Source: Zygophlyctis sp. KS116 | Lineage: Eukaryota; Fungi; Chytridiomycota | Reading direction: 5' to 3' | Length of the DNA stretch: 32,000 bases | Assembly (NCBI GenBank): GCA_054661495.1 | Contig: BAAFSQ010000025.1 | Coordinates: 32,916 to 64,915 of the forward strand | In this document: in pieces, positions 3,107 through 31,836 of the stretch | How the letters are laid out: every line of letters starts with the position of its first letter | How positions within the stretch are numbered: the first letter of the stretch is position 1 | Notes under the pieces: generated by a model | What the model saw: the letters and a program-made list of their open reading frames with translations, nothing else | What the model was told of the DNA's origin: nothing | Database searches by the model: none | Made by a program: the position numbers and the translations under genes

Positions 3107-5161
3107 CTAAACTTCAAATATATGATCAAAGTTTAGGATTATAGACTCTATAACGCGAATCATATAGTTCAGGTCGTTTGGATAGGATCCACCGCCATTC
3201 TCTGGAGAACTGAACAGAGAATTTGCCCATACAATCGATAAATTGAGAGCCGTCATTCGTGTATCCATTTGATGCGTCTGAATACTATAATAAGCATGAG
3301 AAAATTACAGATTCAAGTGCTTCATTAGATCGCGCAATGTTGCATAATGCGCATCATGAAGACGATTAACCAATTCGTGAATCGCAATCAATCGTCTTTT
3401 AGGATCCTCCATACCTAGAAATTCAGCAAATCAATAGAGCTTACGTCCAGCATCCATAAATGAATGGTACATTGCCTTTGGAAATAACGAATCAGGTAAT
3501 TCTGCAAAAAATGTTTTCAAAACTAGTGTCACGTCATATATATTCCAGCTTCCTTGATCTAATACGACCGAATCTATATCTAAGACCTTATTAAAATGCG
3601 AAAATACCCTTGTTAAAAGCATCTCGGATTCTTTGAGAGTTTTTCCATGATCCAGGCTCGCGATAAAGACCATGTGTTTTTAATCCTTTGTCTTCAATAT
3701 GTTCAATACACTTTTTAACAACTTTCGGGACAGGTTCTTCTTCTCTTTCCATCAATTGAACGAGGTTCACTGCAAAATTACATTGAACAGTCCCATCAGG
3801 AAGAGGGAGCTGCATTGGAGATTCTGAAAGATTTAGAGAAAGATTGGCCATATAAGCCACCATAAATTCTTGAAAATCAGCAGAATTATCAATAGAGTCA
3901 ATAGCTTGATTGATACCACAATTCTCTTAAAATTAAGCGCTAAAATATATATACCCGTATTTTCAGGATCCACATCCACTGGACTGACTGCTGTAGCTTC
4001 CATCATTAACATTTCTTCAACAGTTCTAGAGTATGTGAACAAATGTCCTTTTAAAGACTCATCACATTGATCATTAGCTTCTTTTAGCAACTAAAATTTA
4101 ATTTTCAAGCCTTTGATTACCCGAACGAATCTTGGAAGATTTCGATGATAATAATTGTTTCTCATCTCCTGCGTAGCCCTCAATTGATTTTGATAAGCCT
4201 GGACAGAGACTGAAACTTTTCCTCTTGCTTCTTCCTCATATTTTTGCATCTAACTATTAGAATACTTGAAAAAATTATACCTTTGAGGCCGACGCATGAC
4301 TACTCTTCAAAAGAGATAATGGCATAGAAAGAGATCGAGTTATATTATTCATTGGTTTAGGAGGATACAAAGTCTTATTTTGACCATCTCTAGCAATAAT
4401 TGTTCGTTCCCATTCTTCTGAATACATTTCATATTTGTTTTTAGACTATGATTAAACAAAATATTCATACTTTAGTCAATGCATGCTCCGTTTCCTGTAA
4501 GAGTTTTGCATGTTGGTATCCCGCAGATTTTAACTAGATTGATTAGTCCTAAAGATCAACTTACTTGTTTACGTGATCGTTCCGTATCCTTAAATAATCC
4601 ACTTAATCCATCTCCCAACTCAGAAACTTTAAGCGCCAACTTCATATGAACAGAGGCAATCTTCTCATGCAGAGATAAAAACTGTTGCCAGTTATTGCCA
4701 AAAGTACTACTGATTAAACGCGACATCTACCCCTTCTTGCCTCCTTCTTTTGCCGAACTTTGTACCAACTTTATCATAGATTTAGAGTATTCTTCTTCAA
4801 TCGCAGCTCTTTTCTTTAAGAAGGATGCAGCCTCCTTTAAATTTATTAAATCTAAAAATTACCTTGCTTGAATTAATATTCTCTTTGAGTCGTTCCAAGA
4901 GCAAATGAAATCCATCCTATTGATTAGAGCGCGCCGACTAAATTACTTGAAATTGACAGAGTGCAGATAGAGTAGAATCGGTGACTCCAGGCTCATCGTC
5001 TTTGGCGAAATCACCCTCTTCGGACGGTGGAGTTCCTGGCCGAGAAGCTTTGCATTAATCAGCCTAAACATACTAAACTTGTTTAAATATTCATTGGAAT
5101 CAGACAGCTCAGTTTTGGCCTTTGAAAAGAATGAGGCCTTGTCTTCTTTACTGGTGAGCAT
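3107..5161 (-). CDS. F-BAR + RhoGAP protein (Rgd1/Rga7-like), 13 exons
   Basis: 12 introns of 24-31 nt (5048-5073, 4917-4946, 4835-4862, 4707-4730, 4534-4564, 4446-4470, 4250-4280, 4091-4120, 3926-3954, 3580-3607, 3415-3444, 3285-3308). F-BAR: DGFHLLLERLKENINSSKEAASFLKKRAAIEEEYSK. RhoGAP: VPKVVKKCIEHIEDKGLKTHGLYREPG, LKTFFAELPDSLF, NLSIVW. Confidence 0.92.
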
Positions 5162-22151: not shown

Positions 22152-22211
22152 GATCAATAATCAATTATCTTATTCCCGAACAAAGGCTTCCCATGGGCGG
22201 ATTCTCATAGA

Positions 22212-23908
22212 TTAAGTAGCGAACACGTGATTGGGATTCGTTTGCGGAGAAGAGTTTTCCTTCAATCCCTAGAGATTTAACAGTCACAAAGCTTACCCAT
22301 TGCACATAATCTGCAGATTCGCACGCTTCATATTCCGCAATTAAATCTTGAACGACTTCCCTAAAATATTGATTTCCTAAATTTTACCTTGAAGAATCAA
22401 ATTCCTCGAGTCCATCAGCAAACATTGCTTCACGTTTATATTGATCCAAATAAGCATTGCGCTTTCTCATTCTTTCATACTGAACAACTGTGCGCTTAAA
22501 CAGCTAAAACAATTAAAATTAATGATAGTACAGAAGCAATTGAAGTATGGTTGGCCAACATCAACCCAGAAACTCGCTGAGATTGATCCACAAAAGGACT
22601 CTTCCTGGAAAGTGCTACCTGAATAGATGCAGGCCCCCAAGGTATAAACTGTGCAAGACGACGTTCTCTGATTCTTAAAAGAGACTTATGAACCTACTAT
22701 TATACAAAAAGATCATACATCTGTTGGATCCGCCTCACCTTGAATTATATTAAGAATAGAGATATAGCAACTCTTTTTCGAAGGTGTAGTTGACACCATC
22801 CTATTCTTATTCTGCAATAAACGGCGCATCACATCTAAAACAGTCGTTTTACGCACATTTTTTGCATTTTCCACTTGATCATTTGTAAAAGGAGTATAAG
22901 AAGTCATTAGGAAATGACATCTAGGAGTTGGAATTAGTGAAGCTAAAAGCCCAACCAGATCATTATTCATGTATCCAGGATAACGCAAAGTTGATGTACT
23001 TGCACTCATTACAGTAGAGACCTATTTTAAGAAAAGTAAAAATTACCAACTGATTAGTTTGAGCAAATGTAGGATTTTGAATATGTAAATGATCCGAAGC
23101 AATTCTTGTTAAAGCAGAATTATCCAAAACCACCTATAAACTCTTAAAAAACCATTAAAATTACCACAGAATCCGCGTTTAGAGCCAACCTTTTCAAAGA
23201 CAAGAGAGAATTATAAGGTTGAACCACGACATCAGAAATCTTATCATCACTTGGAAAAACCGAATAAGTTTGTGTTAATTTTTTTGGATACCTATCGGAC
23301 AAAGTTTCCAACAAGTAAGATCCCAAACCAGAACCAGTTCCTCCAGCAATAGAATGTAAAAGCATAAATCCCTCCAAACTATCACTTCCATCCGCTTCTC
23401 GATCAATCATTTCCATAATTTCATCGTATACTTTTTCCCCTTGAGCAAATCCATAAGCCCAATTATTTCCAGCACCTCCCCCATCAGCCGATAATGAAAT
23501 ATTCTCTGGATTATATAGATTTGCATATGGCGAAGACAATATAGAATTGATCACCTACTTATTAGAATATGTATTAAATCTTATCAGAAACTGATTCAAC
23601 AATATCAGACAAGATATTCAAAGTTGAGCATTGTAAATAACTTACACGAGGTTCTAAATCCACTAGAATAGCCCTTGGGATATAATGTTCATCGTCAGCC
23701 TATATTTACACTTGAGCTTTTACCTGATAGAAGAAAACATCTTTTCTATCTCCCTGTCCTGCAGAGTCAGTTAGAATTCCCGAAGGCGATATCCCATGTT
23801 CAGCACAGAGCGTTTTCCAAAACTCTTGTCCGACTATACTATTACATGATTTTAAATACTTTGGTTTCCGCATTGTCCAACTTGCAACGTTATGATTTCT
23901 CGAGGCAT
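22212..23908 (-). CDS. TUB4: Gamma-tubulin, 10 exons
   Basis: [83 protein letters not shown]. Nine introns, one of 91 nt. Confidence 0.97.
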
Positions 23909-29299: not shown

Positions 29300-29948
29300 C
29301 TATTTAGAAATTTCATCATAAAACTTGATTAGAATTAATACTATTTTTTCCATGGCTAATCTCCAATTATTAAATTGAGATTGTAATCTAGCATCATCCT
29401 CTGATCCTCCTAAATATTTGAAAAAATTAGATTTGGAAGGAACTGCCTTCATTGCAACTGAAAAGATTGGTCTAATTAGAAAAGAATGATACTTTGAAAG
29501 CGTTTCTTGATACGCACTAGTAAAACTAACCGATAATTCTTGATCCGGACGAAAATTAAGTCCTTTACTACTAAATTCCAGTGCTCTTTTCAGCCTATAT
29601 TTACAATATTTAAATTACCATAATAGAGCTTCTTTTGCTACATTTTGATTCTGTTTGATTTCTTTGAATACTATAGATTGTAGAGTTTTACAGTCTGGAT
29701 TAGATTTAGCTTGAGCTCTAATTGTCTATTATAAATTACAGTCTATAATTACTCTAACGTTTCCTAGAATATCACTCTTTACAGGTCCGAATGCAGTTCC
29801 AAGTAATTCTACTGATTAAATAGTATTTTCTACCCAAAATAACTACAAGAGACTCTGTAGCTTCCAAAAACCCAGTTATTTCTATTTGATCATCATTGGT
29901 ATCTACATCTATCCATGATTTACCAATCTTATCAAAGGCTGTAGTCAT
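29300..29948 (-). CDS. Glycolipid transfer protein (GLTP/HET-C2-like), 4 exons, not in the ORF track
   Basis: Introns 29809-29833, 29726-29752 and 29595-29618 give FLEATESLV..LELLGTAFGPVKSDILGNV, ALLWLKRALEF, AYQETLSKYHSFLIRPIFSVAMKAVP. Confidence 0.92.
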
Positions 29949-29983: not shown

Positions 29984-30788
29984 ATGGGTTGTGGAGCCTC
30001 AAAGGAAGCATCAGTCATACAAACTACGATTCCAAAGAATGATGATTCAAAGGAAAAGGCTGTAATGTTCATTGCGGAAAAGGGAGTACTTCCAGGGATT
30101 AAAGTCAAGTCGAGTCAAACGGCTGTTTGTTTTGAAATTCCATTAGAAGATCTGGCTACAAATAGTGTTAATACTCTTAAAAATAGTATTAGTAACTCAA
30201 AGAATTCTCTTCCTAAAATGGGTCTATCTAATGAAGATATACATTCTAAATTGGCTAATGCAGAAGAGAGATGGAAGGTAGTAGTTTATTTTTATATTTT
30301 AGGAATTGGAAAATAGAAAATCTAAACGGAAAAAGGGAGATCGGCCTCTACTTTCATCGTCTACAAAGGATGATCCTAAATTACTTGAAAAGAAATTAAA
30401 AGAAAAGGAAATTCAAGCGGCTCTTAATCGTCAAAAAGAAAAGGAAAAGTTGGCTGCTAAAATTGCTGCTCAAGAAGAACGTGCTAGACTAGTTCTTGAA
30501 AGGAAAAAGTTATTGCAAGACTCTAATCAGGAAGAGAGATTATCAGTAGGAGGAGAGAACGATTCTTCCCAGTCTGCGTCAGATCAGTCTAGTACTCGTG
30601 ATAGTGTCAGCAATCAATCTTGTTCAGAGTCTAATGCGAGTTCACGAATTAGTCAATCTTTAGAGACTGAAACCACTGATGTTGACGATCGTGATGAATC
30701 ATCAACTTCTCTTGAATCATCCCCAATAATTATTAAAAAAGACTTTAAAAACAAGACTCAAGAAAGAGTAGAGACTAGAGTCAAATAG
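29984..30788 (+). CDS. Stathmin-domain protein (STMND1-like), 259 aa, with N-terminal acylation motif
   Basis: Intron 30278-30302. MGCGAS; AVCFEIPL; LSNEDIHSKLANAEERWK; LEKKLKEKEIQAALNRQKEKEKLAAKIAAQEERARLVLERK. Confidence 0.75.
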
Positions 30789-30816: not shown

Positions 30817-31836
30817 TTATAGAGTAGGACTCCAAAATGCCAAATCTGAATCTGCACTTGCAAACATCATATATCTAGGATTCCAAGCAACAGCTGTACT
30901 TGCTTTACAATGTCCTTCAAGCGAAGTTATTAATTTTCCAGATTCAACTTCCCAAAAATATATAGAACCATCTTGAGATCCTGAATATACAAATTTCCCA
31001 CAAGGAGTAAAATTGGAATCTAAAGAAAGACCTTGTTGATTTGAATGTCCTTCTAGTCTATGTTTCAAATCTCCACTAAAAGCATCTATTATATAAATGA
31101 CATTCATTTTTGTTGAAATTAGTATATAATTCCCATCATTACTAAATTGAATATTTGACCATTGAGGAATAAATGAAGTATTTGATTCTATATTTTTAGC
31201 TTTTGATTCTATATTTTTAGCTACATCAAATGAAGCAAAAGGTCCATTTTCATAATTTTTTAAATCATATAATCTCAACATCCTTGATTGCATTCCCACA
31301 CCAAATACCAAACCACCTTGATCAAATCCAATGACTGAAGGACCTGAGCCTGCCATTGTACTCATGAATCCCTGACAATTTGGACTCCTTAGATCCCATA
31401 ACCTAACAGTTTCATCCTCTGAACAACTTAAAAATGTATCATCTTGTGGAGACATTTTCAAGTTTACTACTCTTTTAGTATGTCCCTTGTAGTATCTTAG
31501 ATATTTGTTATCATAAATTGAAAGATATCTAATTGCATCGTCTTCTTTAGTAGAAGCGTAAATTAAATTTGTAGGTTTATGAGTGAATCTAGCCAAAGAA
31601 CAACCATATTTCTTTGAGTATGCAGTATTTTTCAATTTTCCTAATCTTGCATCGTAGAGCCTTAGAGTTTCATCACCTGAAGAACTTAACAAGTATGATC
31701 CGGTTGCATCAAAATCAATAGAGTAATTACAAGTAGCATTGGGAAATACCTTTCCAACTTGAAATTTCTGAAATAAATCTCTGGATAAAACCATTCCATT
31801 TCCCTTTTTTGCGCCGCCGGTTGTTGTTTTTTCCAT
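30817..31836 (-). CDS. SWD2: WD40 protein Swd2/WDR82 (COMPASS/CPF)
   Basis: SKKYGC.LARFTH, ASTKEDDAIRYLS.YDNKYLRYY.GH, DETVRLWDLRSPNCQG, GPFASF, NPRYMMFASA...LAFW. The true start may be the second Met at 31794. Confidence 0.95.
   Translation of the reverse strand: MEKTTTGGAKKGNGMVLSRDLFQKFQVGKVFPNATCNYSIDFDATGSYLLSSSGDETLRLYDARLGKLKNTAYSKKYGCSLARFTHKPTNLIYASTKEDDAIRYLSIYDNKYLRYYKGHTKRVVNLKMSPQDDTFLSCSEDETVRLWDLRSPNCQGFMSTMAGSGPSVIGFDQGGLVFGVGMQSRMLRLYDLKNYENGPFASFDVAKNIESKAKNIESNTSFIPQWSNIQFSNDGNYILISTKMNVIYIIDAFSGDLKHRLEGHSNQQGLSLDSNFTPCGKFVYSGSQDGSIYFWEVESGKLITSLEGHCKASTAVAWNPRYMMFASADSDLAFWSPTL

Follow-up and report, generated by a model that had tools for sequence, protein, structure and literature searches.

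A putative lipid-anchored stathmin-like protein of zoosporic fungi, encoded by a two-exon gene of the chytrid Zygophlyctis sp. KS116

Do fungi that still build a flagellum also keep a stathmin, and if so, of which type? This question is raised by a short gene in a stretch of 32,000 nt from the chytrid Zygophlyctis sp. KS116 (assembly GCA_054661495.1, contig BAAFSQ010000025.1, positions 32,916-64,915 of the forward strand), which was analysed as a whole and is called the window below. A first-pass annotation of this DNA had read the gene as a fungal stathmin with two tubulin-binding repeats, a lipid anchor and a basic patch, and had stated that stathmins are usually regarded as proteins of animals and other holozoans. 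The latter view is out of date, since the non-metazoan stathmins listed by Deng et al. (2024, Mol Biol Cell; PMC11238091) already include members from Fungi and ciliates, so a fungal stathmin per se is not new. In the same work STMND1 is described as the ancient stathmin clade that can be traced to choanoflagellate-like ancestors (PMC11238091). Its consensus start MGCGPSQ was found by experiment to be dually lipidated and to be required for membrane localisation; additionally, STMND1 possesses an NLS within its stathmin-like domain, binds tubulin and is localised to the motile cilium (PMC11238091).

Here, we describe the chytrid gene together with its relatives from other zoosporic fungi. We consider it likely that it is a gene of the expressed type whose spliced product is a stathmin family member with a membrane anchor, animal STMND1 being the closest architectural match. 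All features of the locus that are discussed in the following are collected in Table 1.

Gene model and splicing

The spliced product, as read from the sequence and its open reading frames, comprises 98 + 161 = 259 codons. If the intron is retained, translation meets a stop at 30314-30316 and the result is a 110-aa ORF. The first-pass annotation had joined the two reading frames into a 259-aa protein by removal of this 25-nt intron, and comparison with relatives bears this out. A profile of the conserved core (the domain only) of 32 relatives, denominated A4, was searched back against the Zygophlyctis genome. Its positions 3-58 match the window at 30113-30277 (E 2.8e-15) and its positions 59-138 match at 30303-30530 (E 1.3e-19). 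The profile thus breaks exactly at the intron with no position gained or lost, which argues that the exon junction is real.

Table 1. Features of the stathmin-like gene and of its surroundings, with positions counted from the first letter of the window
Feature	Position	Strand	Description
Gamma-tubulin gene, multi-exon	about 22165-23873	-	about 6 kb upstream of the stathmin-like gene
Gamma-tubulin exon	23147-23554	-	matches human TUBG1 residues 74-205, E 1.4e-65
GLTP orthologue	29775-29948	-	divergent neighbour
Gap between start codons	29949-29983		35 nt
Stathmin-like gene, exon 1	29984-30277	+	ATG at 29984; 294 nt, 98 codons, last codons TGG AAG; lipidation start, then disordered spacer and cap motif, then first part of helix/repeat 1
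MGCGASK (residues 1-7; MGCGAS 1-6)	29984-30004	+	predicted N-myristoylation of Gly2 and S-palmitoylation of Cys3
AVCFEIPL (residues 47-54)	30122-30145	+	candidate alpha-tubulin cap (N-terminal hairpin) motif
SLPK...LSNEDIHSKLANAEERWK	30206-30277	+	start of helix/repeat 1, aligned to RB3 in the profile-to-PDB alignment; LSNEDIHSKLANAEERWK are the last residues of exon 1
Stathmin-like gene, intron	30278-30302	+	25 nt, GT-AG, phase 0, follows the WK codons immediately
Stathmin-like gene, exon 2	30303-30788	+	161 codons (30303-30785) and TAG (30786-30788); from the rest of helix 1 through the basic loop and helix/repeat 2 to the Ser-rich acidic tail
RKSKRKKGDRP	30315-30347	+	conserved basic, Gly/Pro-containing, NLS-like patch between the two helices
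PKLLEKKLKEKEIQAALNRQKE...LVLERKKL	30375-30512	+	helix/repeat 2, collinear with repeat 2 of RB3
LSVGGE	30540-30557	+	family-specific motif just past the stathmin-like domain
ETETTDVDD	30663-30689	+	conserved acidic, Thr-rich C-terminal motif
Gap between stop codons	30789-30816		28 nt
WD40 gene	30817-31836	-	convergent neighbour

The opposite reading takes the two frames as separate or decayed, with the intron left unspliced and a product that is either the 110-aa read-through peptide or nothing at all. It can appeal to the available RNA, which consists of one 160-nt contig from a single metatranscriptome run (on 30603-30762, within exon 2) and does not bridge the intron, and to the metagenome gene callers, which give only the 110-aa ORF (P0001). 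Against this reading speaks the strong constraint that the family puts on both exons, together with their exact abutment in A4. The same junction is also found in relatives that have no intron: in the orthologues P0063 and P0002, at 62-64% identity, WK|EL is continuous in one open frame. P0063 is 64% identical over exon 2, is encoded on a genomic contig and has the same neighbours on both sides. In Batrachochytrium dendrobatidis an intron occurs at the identical point (AAG|GTGCGT), and the exon-1 ORFs of several uncultured relatives run past WK directly into a Val codon (GTN), i.e., into a codon that starts with GT. The unspliced reading is therefore extremely improbable, and at the level of sequence comparison we regard the two-exon stathmin-like gene with its 25-nt intron as confirmed. 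For analyses of the whole protein the intact orthologues P0002 and P0063 were used, and the exons of the window were searched individually.

The same splice point shows variation elsewhere in the family. Many chytrid annotations (P0005, P0007, P0012, P0036, P0038) show, immediately behind WK, a conserved insert of about 11 residues that keeps the reading frame and is of the types VGAQLDHLLYG, VGNDLDNLLYG or VREGLDRLLGV. Isoforms with and without the insert are annotated in Batrachochytrium (P0014 vs P0022; locus L010, about 3684-3760). The insert begins at the GT of the conserved intron. This is suggestive of an alternative 5' splice site, with the retained segment itself conserved at the protein level. 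The 25-nt intron of the window cannot yield such an insert because its retention meets a stop.

Relationship to the stathmin family

Whether the encoded protein is a stathmin was approached with profile, structure-database and feature searches. The Pfam profile Stathmin (PF00836), whose curated cut-off is 24.7 bits, matches exon 1 with residues 42-97 against profile positions 9-58 (E 0.0018, 18.7 bits), and exon 2 alone gave no Stathmin match in Pfam. Two orthologues score higher with PF00836, namely P0007 from Gorgonomyces with 26.6 bits, above the cut-off, over positions 15-135 of the 136 in the profile, and P0010 with 23.5 bits over positions 28-134. In the Pfam check, which had been proposed together with the first reading of the gene, exon 1 is matched and one orthologue clears the curated cut-off, but the exons of the window themselves stay below it. 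Throughout the family a Stathmin match at E < 0.1 was obtained for 9 of 56 members, and a match to Spectrin repeat for 8.

The profile A4 was also compared with 177,635 distinct PDB sequences. Among its 25 matches the ranks 1 to 16 are occupied by Stathmin-4 or Stathmin throughout (E 0.024-0.11), and A4 positions 32-134 are collinear with residues 33-139 of RB3, a region that covers both repeats. Spectrin follows at E 0.22, so the margin is weak, and the E-values of 0.024 carry a large correction for composition bias. In this alignment the residue of RB3 recurs in six of 11 family-invariant columns: L and P of SLP, K of KL, R of NR, and, in repeat 2, V together with the last K. The trimming to the domain was needed, as the full-length family profile A1 had 0 PDB matches at E <= 1. 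Searches of the PDB by phmmer with each exon gave chance matches only and no stathmin, and word-limited searches with the family profiles retrieved no stathmin from animals or choanoflagellates.

A search of a protein atlas by language-model features is independent of these alignments. It placed P0002 nearest to clusters labelled 'Stathmin domain containing 1' (score 0.93, 206 of 256 features), which make up 24 of the 30 hits. For exon 1 alone the nearest clusters were Stathmin and DUF4619/Stathmin at 0.87, which is to be taken as a lead only.

An alternative has to be weighed here, according to which these sequences form a lineage-specific, lipid-anchored and disordered coiled-coil family of zoosporic fungi without homology to stathmin, the likeness being due to the K/E/R-rich composition of the helices and to a common acylation motif. 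MGC-type N-termini are indeed found in many unrelated proteins. The borderline statistics fit this explanation, as does the fact that Spectrin repeat is matched about as often as Stathmin among the members, and so does the failure of both the single-sequence PDB searches and A1 to find any stathmin. Against it stand the best 16 PDB matches, which are stathmins without exception and share a single collinear register for some 100 residues, and the Pfam match, which takes in the non-helical cap motif as well. The identity with RB3 in more than half of the invariant columns, the preference of the feature search for STMND1 and the orthologue that passes the curated Pfam cut-off point in the same direction. 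We therefore regard the coiled-coil explanation as unlikely. The identity as a stathmin, as proposed in the first reading, is supported by Pfam, by the comparison of A4 with the PDB, by the atlas features and by the conserved architecture of STMND1 type, each statistical link being borderline. Judged from these borderline but concordant sequence data, the interpretation of the chytrid gene as a stathmin is largely supported.

Domain architecture and possible tubulin binding

The members of the family share a typical layout. It starts with MGCGASK and a variable disordered spacer, followed by FEIP, the first repeat SLPKL...[DE][IL]..KLAN.E.RWK and the basic patch R.RKRGDKP.L. The C-terminal half comprises the helix LK.RL.EKE..A..NR.RE..KLQ.KLA.QE.HA..V.ERK, the motif LS[WV]GGE and a Ser-rich tail that ends in SGSGRS..TDTTDV. 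The motifs that the first-pass annotation had named occur in the Zygophlyctis protein and show little or no variation across the family. In the start motif M1, G2, C3, G4, S6 and K7 are nearly invariant across the chytrid family; it is close to MGCGPSQ of STMND1, in line with the STMND1-like start that had been claimed, and its lipidation is a prediction. MGCGASK fits the PROSITE pattern for N-myristoylation, with the adjacent Cys available for palmitoylation. Within the proposed cap AVCFEIPL the residues FEIP are invariant or nearly so, and they are situated in the N-terminal part of the Pfam Stathmin match. At the start of repeat 1 the family-invariant L, P and K are identical in RB3. The same holds for the invariant or nearly invariant N, R, V and K of repeat 2 and for its conserved H-A pair. 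Both of the suggested tubulin-binding repeats thus align collinearly with RB3 and correspond to two predicted helices, which are split by a loop. The basic stretch RKSKRKK is present in exon 2 as stated; it is part of the conserved patch inside the stathmin-like domain and is NLS-like.

Beyond this domain two further motifs are conserved. An alignment of 10 sequences shows no variation at S, G, G and E of LSVGGE, a motif without counterpart in the alignment with RB3. ETETTDVDD is kept in P0063 and corresponds to the family consensus ...SGSGRS..T.TTDV. The tails of several orthologues (P0008-P0011, P0017) contain in addition DSGKGSS, a sequence of the DSGxxS type known from beta-TrCP phosphodegrons, which may hint at regulated turnover in a part of the family. 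The protein of the window is without DSGKGSS.

An AlphaFold2 model of P0063, calculated with the family alignment, is mostly disordered (mean pLDDT 61) and shows helices at 71-92 and 110-162 with a pLDDT of about 94. Residues 93-109, i.e., the basic Gly/Pro stretch, form a loop between them. According to this model the domain would be bipartite; RB3, by contrast, has one long continuous helix.

The resemblance to STMND1 concerns several levels. The size is similar (259 aa here vs about 280 aa), the start is of the form MGCG.S in both proteins, and a spacer is followed by a stathmin-like domain with an internal basic patch, NLS-like in the chytrid protein. Both come from organisms or cells that bear motile cilia, and STMND1 clusters are the nearest ones in the feature search. 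The basic patch appears to be placed differently: in the chytrid protein it is located between the helices, whereas the NLS consensus of STMND1, PLRKPPARLKKLKIKK, seems to precede helix 1. A further difference is given by the additional C-terminal motifs LS[WV]GGE and SGSGRS..TDTTDV of the chytrids. The atlas features point to a possible orthology of the two.

With RB3, whose stathmin-like domain is part of the tubulin T2R crystal structures 1SA0 and 4I4T, and the other canonical stathmins STMN1-4, the chytrid protein has in common the collinear start of repeat 1 (SLP...S..[DE]I..KL.A.E.R.K), the likewise collinear pattern NR...HA..V..K of repeat 2 and an upstream cap-like motif [AC]FE[IL], at E-values of only 0.02-0.1. 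It is intrinsically disordered outside the helices, as are STMN1-4. In contrast with RB3 its helix is interrupted by the basic Pro/Gly loop. The predicted combination of myristoyl and palmitoyl distinguishes it from STMN1, which has no anchor, and from STMN2-4, which carry palmitoyl only, and the long Ser-rich acidic tail is a further difference.

Binding of tubulin was addressed by complex prediction with one dimer, composed of the large exons of Zygophlyctis alpha- and beta-tubulin, and residues 40-159 of P0063. The ipSAE of 0.57 (0.55-0.57 among runs), compared with 0.23 for the best control, lends weak support. At least 54% of the contacts are shared among the runs, and the pLDDT of the partner is at least 56. 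In a benchmark, 51 of 78 solved complexes came up to the mark, as did 2 of 108 mismatched pairs; the range up to 0.60 contained only 5 of the 78 solved complexes, yet all 4 passing mismatches out of 180. As complexes of stathmin with tubulin have already been solved, the positive outcome may reflect memory of them, and the prediction is to be understood as a sign of likeness and not of binding.

We infer a membrane-tethered binder or sensor of tubulin of the STMND1 type, the lipid anchor, the tubulin binding and any nuclear or flagellar role all being part of this inference. Myristoylation of Gly2 and palmitoylation of Cys3 would provide a membrane tether, perhaps to the plasma membrane or the flagellar membrane of the zoospore. 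FEIPL and the two helices could then bind soluble alpha/beta-tubulin in the manner of stathmin, with the former capping alpha-tubulin and the latter lying along one or more dimers. The basic patch between the helices might provide an additional contact with the acidic surface of tubulin, or it might be an NLS that is masked as long as tubulin is bound, as has been proposed for STMND1. Such a protein would act as a local sensor or buffer of tubulin instead of a bulk sequesterer.

It could of course also be a classical bulk sequesterer like STMN1, which destabilises microtubules by forming a T2S complex with two dimers along one continuous helix. The alignment of both repeats with RB3 is compatible with this, and so is the one-dimer prediction with its weak support. 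A lipid anchor, however, speaks for a membrane-bound pool, and the conserved basic Gly/Pro loop breaks the helix. In stathmin the starts of the two repeats are about 51 residues apart, as opposed to about 44 residues counted on the sequence here. The short stathmin-like protein without anchor that is encoded elsewhere in the same genome (see below) would suit the role of a soluble sequesterer better. As for STMND1, it interferes with assembly at high concentrations only, and a function as a sensor has been proposed for it (PMC11238091). Taken together, a bulk sequesterer is quite unlikely, and the membrane-tethered sensor or buffer is preferred.

A more far-reaching proposal is that fungi keep this stathmin-like protein only where a flagellum is still built, and that it serves there as a membrane-tethered sensor of free tubulin that links assembly or retraction of the flagellum with the nucleus or with the turnover of tubulin. 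We put it forward tentatively, as a possibility that we hold to be somewhat less probable than its opposite.

Distribution, genomic neighbourhood and a second stathmin-like gene

A phmmer search of 1.84 billion representative proteins with exon 1 as the query yielded 17 matches, and searches with family profiles yielded 78 and then 21. All named homologues come from zoosporic fungi of the Chytridiomycetes or Neocallimastigomycota, with at least 40 named fungi. The former are represented by Batrachochytrium, Boothiomyces, Gorgonomyces, Globomyces, Chytriomyces, Rhizoclosmatium, Cladochytrium, Polychytrium, Rhizophlyctis, Lobulomyces and others, the latter by Neocallimastix, Anaeromyces and Piromyces. 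Of these, Anaeromyces and Piromyces were added by a second profile (A6) that was built from the most divergent members. The profile searches, which were word-limited and non-exhaustive for distant members, found no homologue in Dikarya, Mucoromycota or Zoopagomycota. Including A6 they also found none in Blastocladiomycota, Spizellomyces, Monoblepharidomycetes, holozoans or ciliates. As Blastocladiomycota, Spizellomyces and Monoblepharidomycetes are without matches too, the pattern fits a retention in flagellated fungi only and equally well a family that is restricted to certain clades. Of the suggested retention in flagellated fungi it therefore holds that every named homologue is from a flagellated fungus, but the same distribution would result from clade restriction.

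All named matches are annotated as 'hypothetical protein', and a precomputed Pfam Stathmin label is attached to 1 of 78, so the family is almost wholly invisible to standard annotation. In the literature no paper was found that treats stathmin together with chytrids, and none that contains the locus tag of the Batrachochytrium orthologue. What appears to be new, on the evidence of these sequences, is an STMND1-like architecture conserved across dozens of zoosporic fungi, nearly all of them under the Pfam threshold, of which we found no description. The result extends a published idea (PMC11238091) and is not a new kind of system. If the homology holds, the origin of the STMND1-like architecture moves back to the opisthokont ancestor, its phyletic pattern can be tested against the loss of the flagellum, and experiments become possible in chytrids that combine a motile cilium with a walled stage devoid of cilia. 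Transformable chytrids exist (Spizellomyces). A tractable chytrid that bears the gene would then offer a unicellular system for the function of the oldest stathmins; in Spizellomyces itself the word-limited searches found no orthologue.

The window is AT-rich (GC about 34%) and contains, besides the genes listed in Table 1, those for Cdc73, ERG4/24, an SF3b145-type protein with DUF382/PSP and a GPI ethanolamine-phosphate transferase of the PIGO/PIGG type. The gene that diverges from the stathmin-like one is an orthologue of GLTP (glycolipid-transfer protein). The short exons upstream of the stathmin-like gene gave no GLTP match in Pfam; the identity comes from orthologous loci, as in L011, where the GLTP gene next to the orthologue shares 63% identity with the first exon found here. 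This head-to-head pair of GLTP and stathmin-like genes is conserved from Zygophlyctis to Batrachochytrium dendrobatidis (L010), and with 35 nt between the two ATGs their 5' ends must share a promoter or have overlapping ones. On the other side the same convergent WD40 neighbour recurs in the loci L011 and L002. Since only 28 nt separate the two stop codons, the 3' ends of the transcripts must overlap. The window also contains a gamma-tubulin gene (Table 1), and we see no reason to assume a functional link between it and the stathmin-like gene.

Outside the window the same genome harbours a second stathmin-like gene (G000:C12, locus L001, 1501-2138, minus strand). Its model consists of 4 exons with about 185 codons, 0 stops and introns of 26, 28 and 26 nt, of which the second is apparently of the GC-AG type (GCAAGT...TAG). 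The encoded protein starts with MESVKKSIAFEIEI and possesses neither a lipidation motif nor a basic patch. The A4 search of the genome left this gene unmatched, and hhalign of A4 against its exons was insignificant (probability 3.7% and 0.6%). With the gene of the window it shares a cap-like motif, IAFEIEI, and two repeat starts of the pattern ..KL/M.A...R.K.., and its last exon alone reaches 23.7 bits with Pfam Stathmin (E 5e-5). Judged by these features, it is a separate and more canonical-looking lineage.
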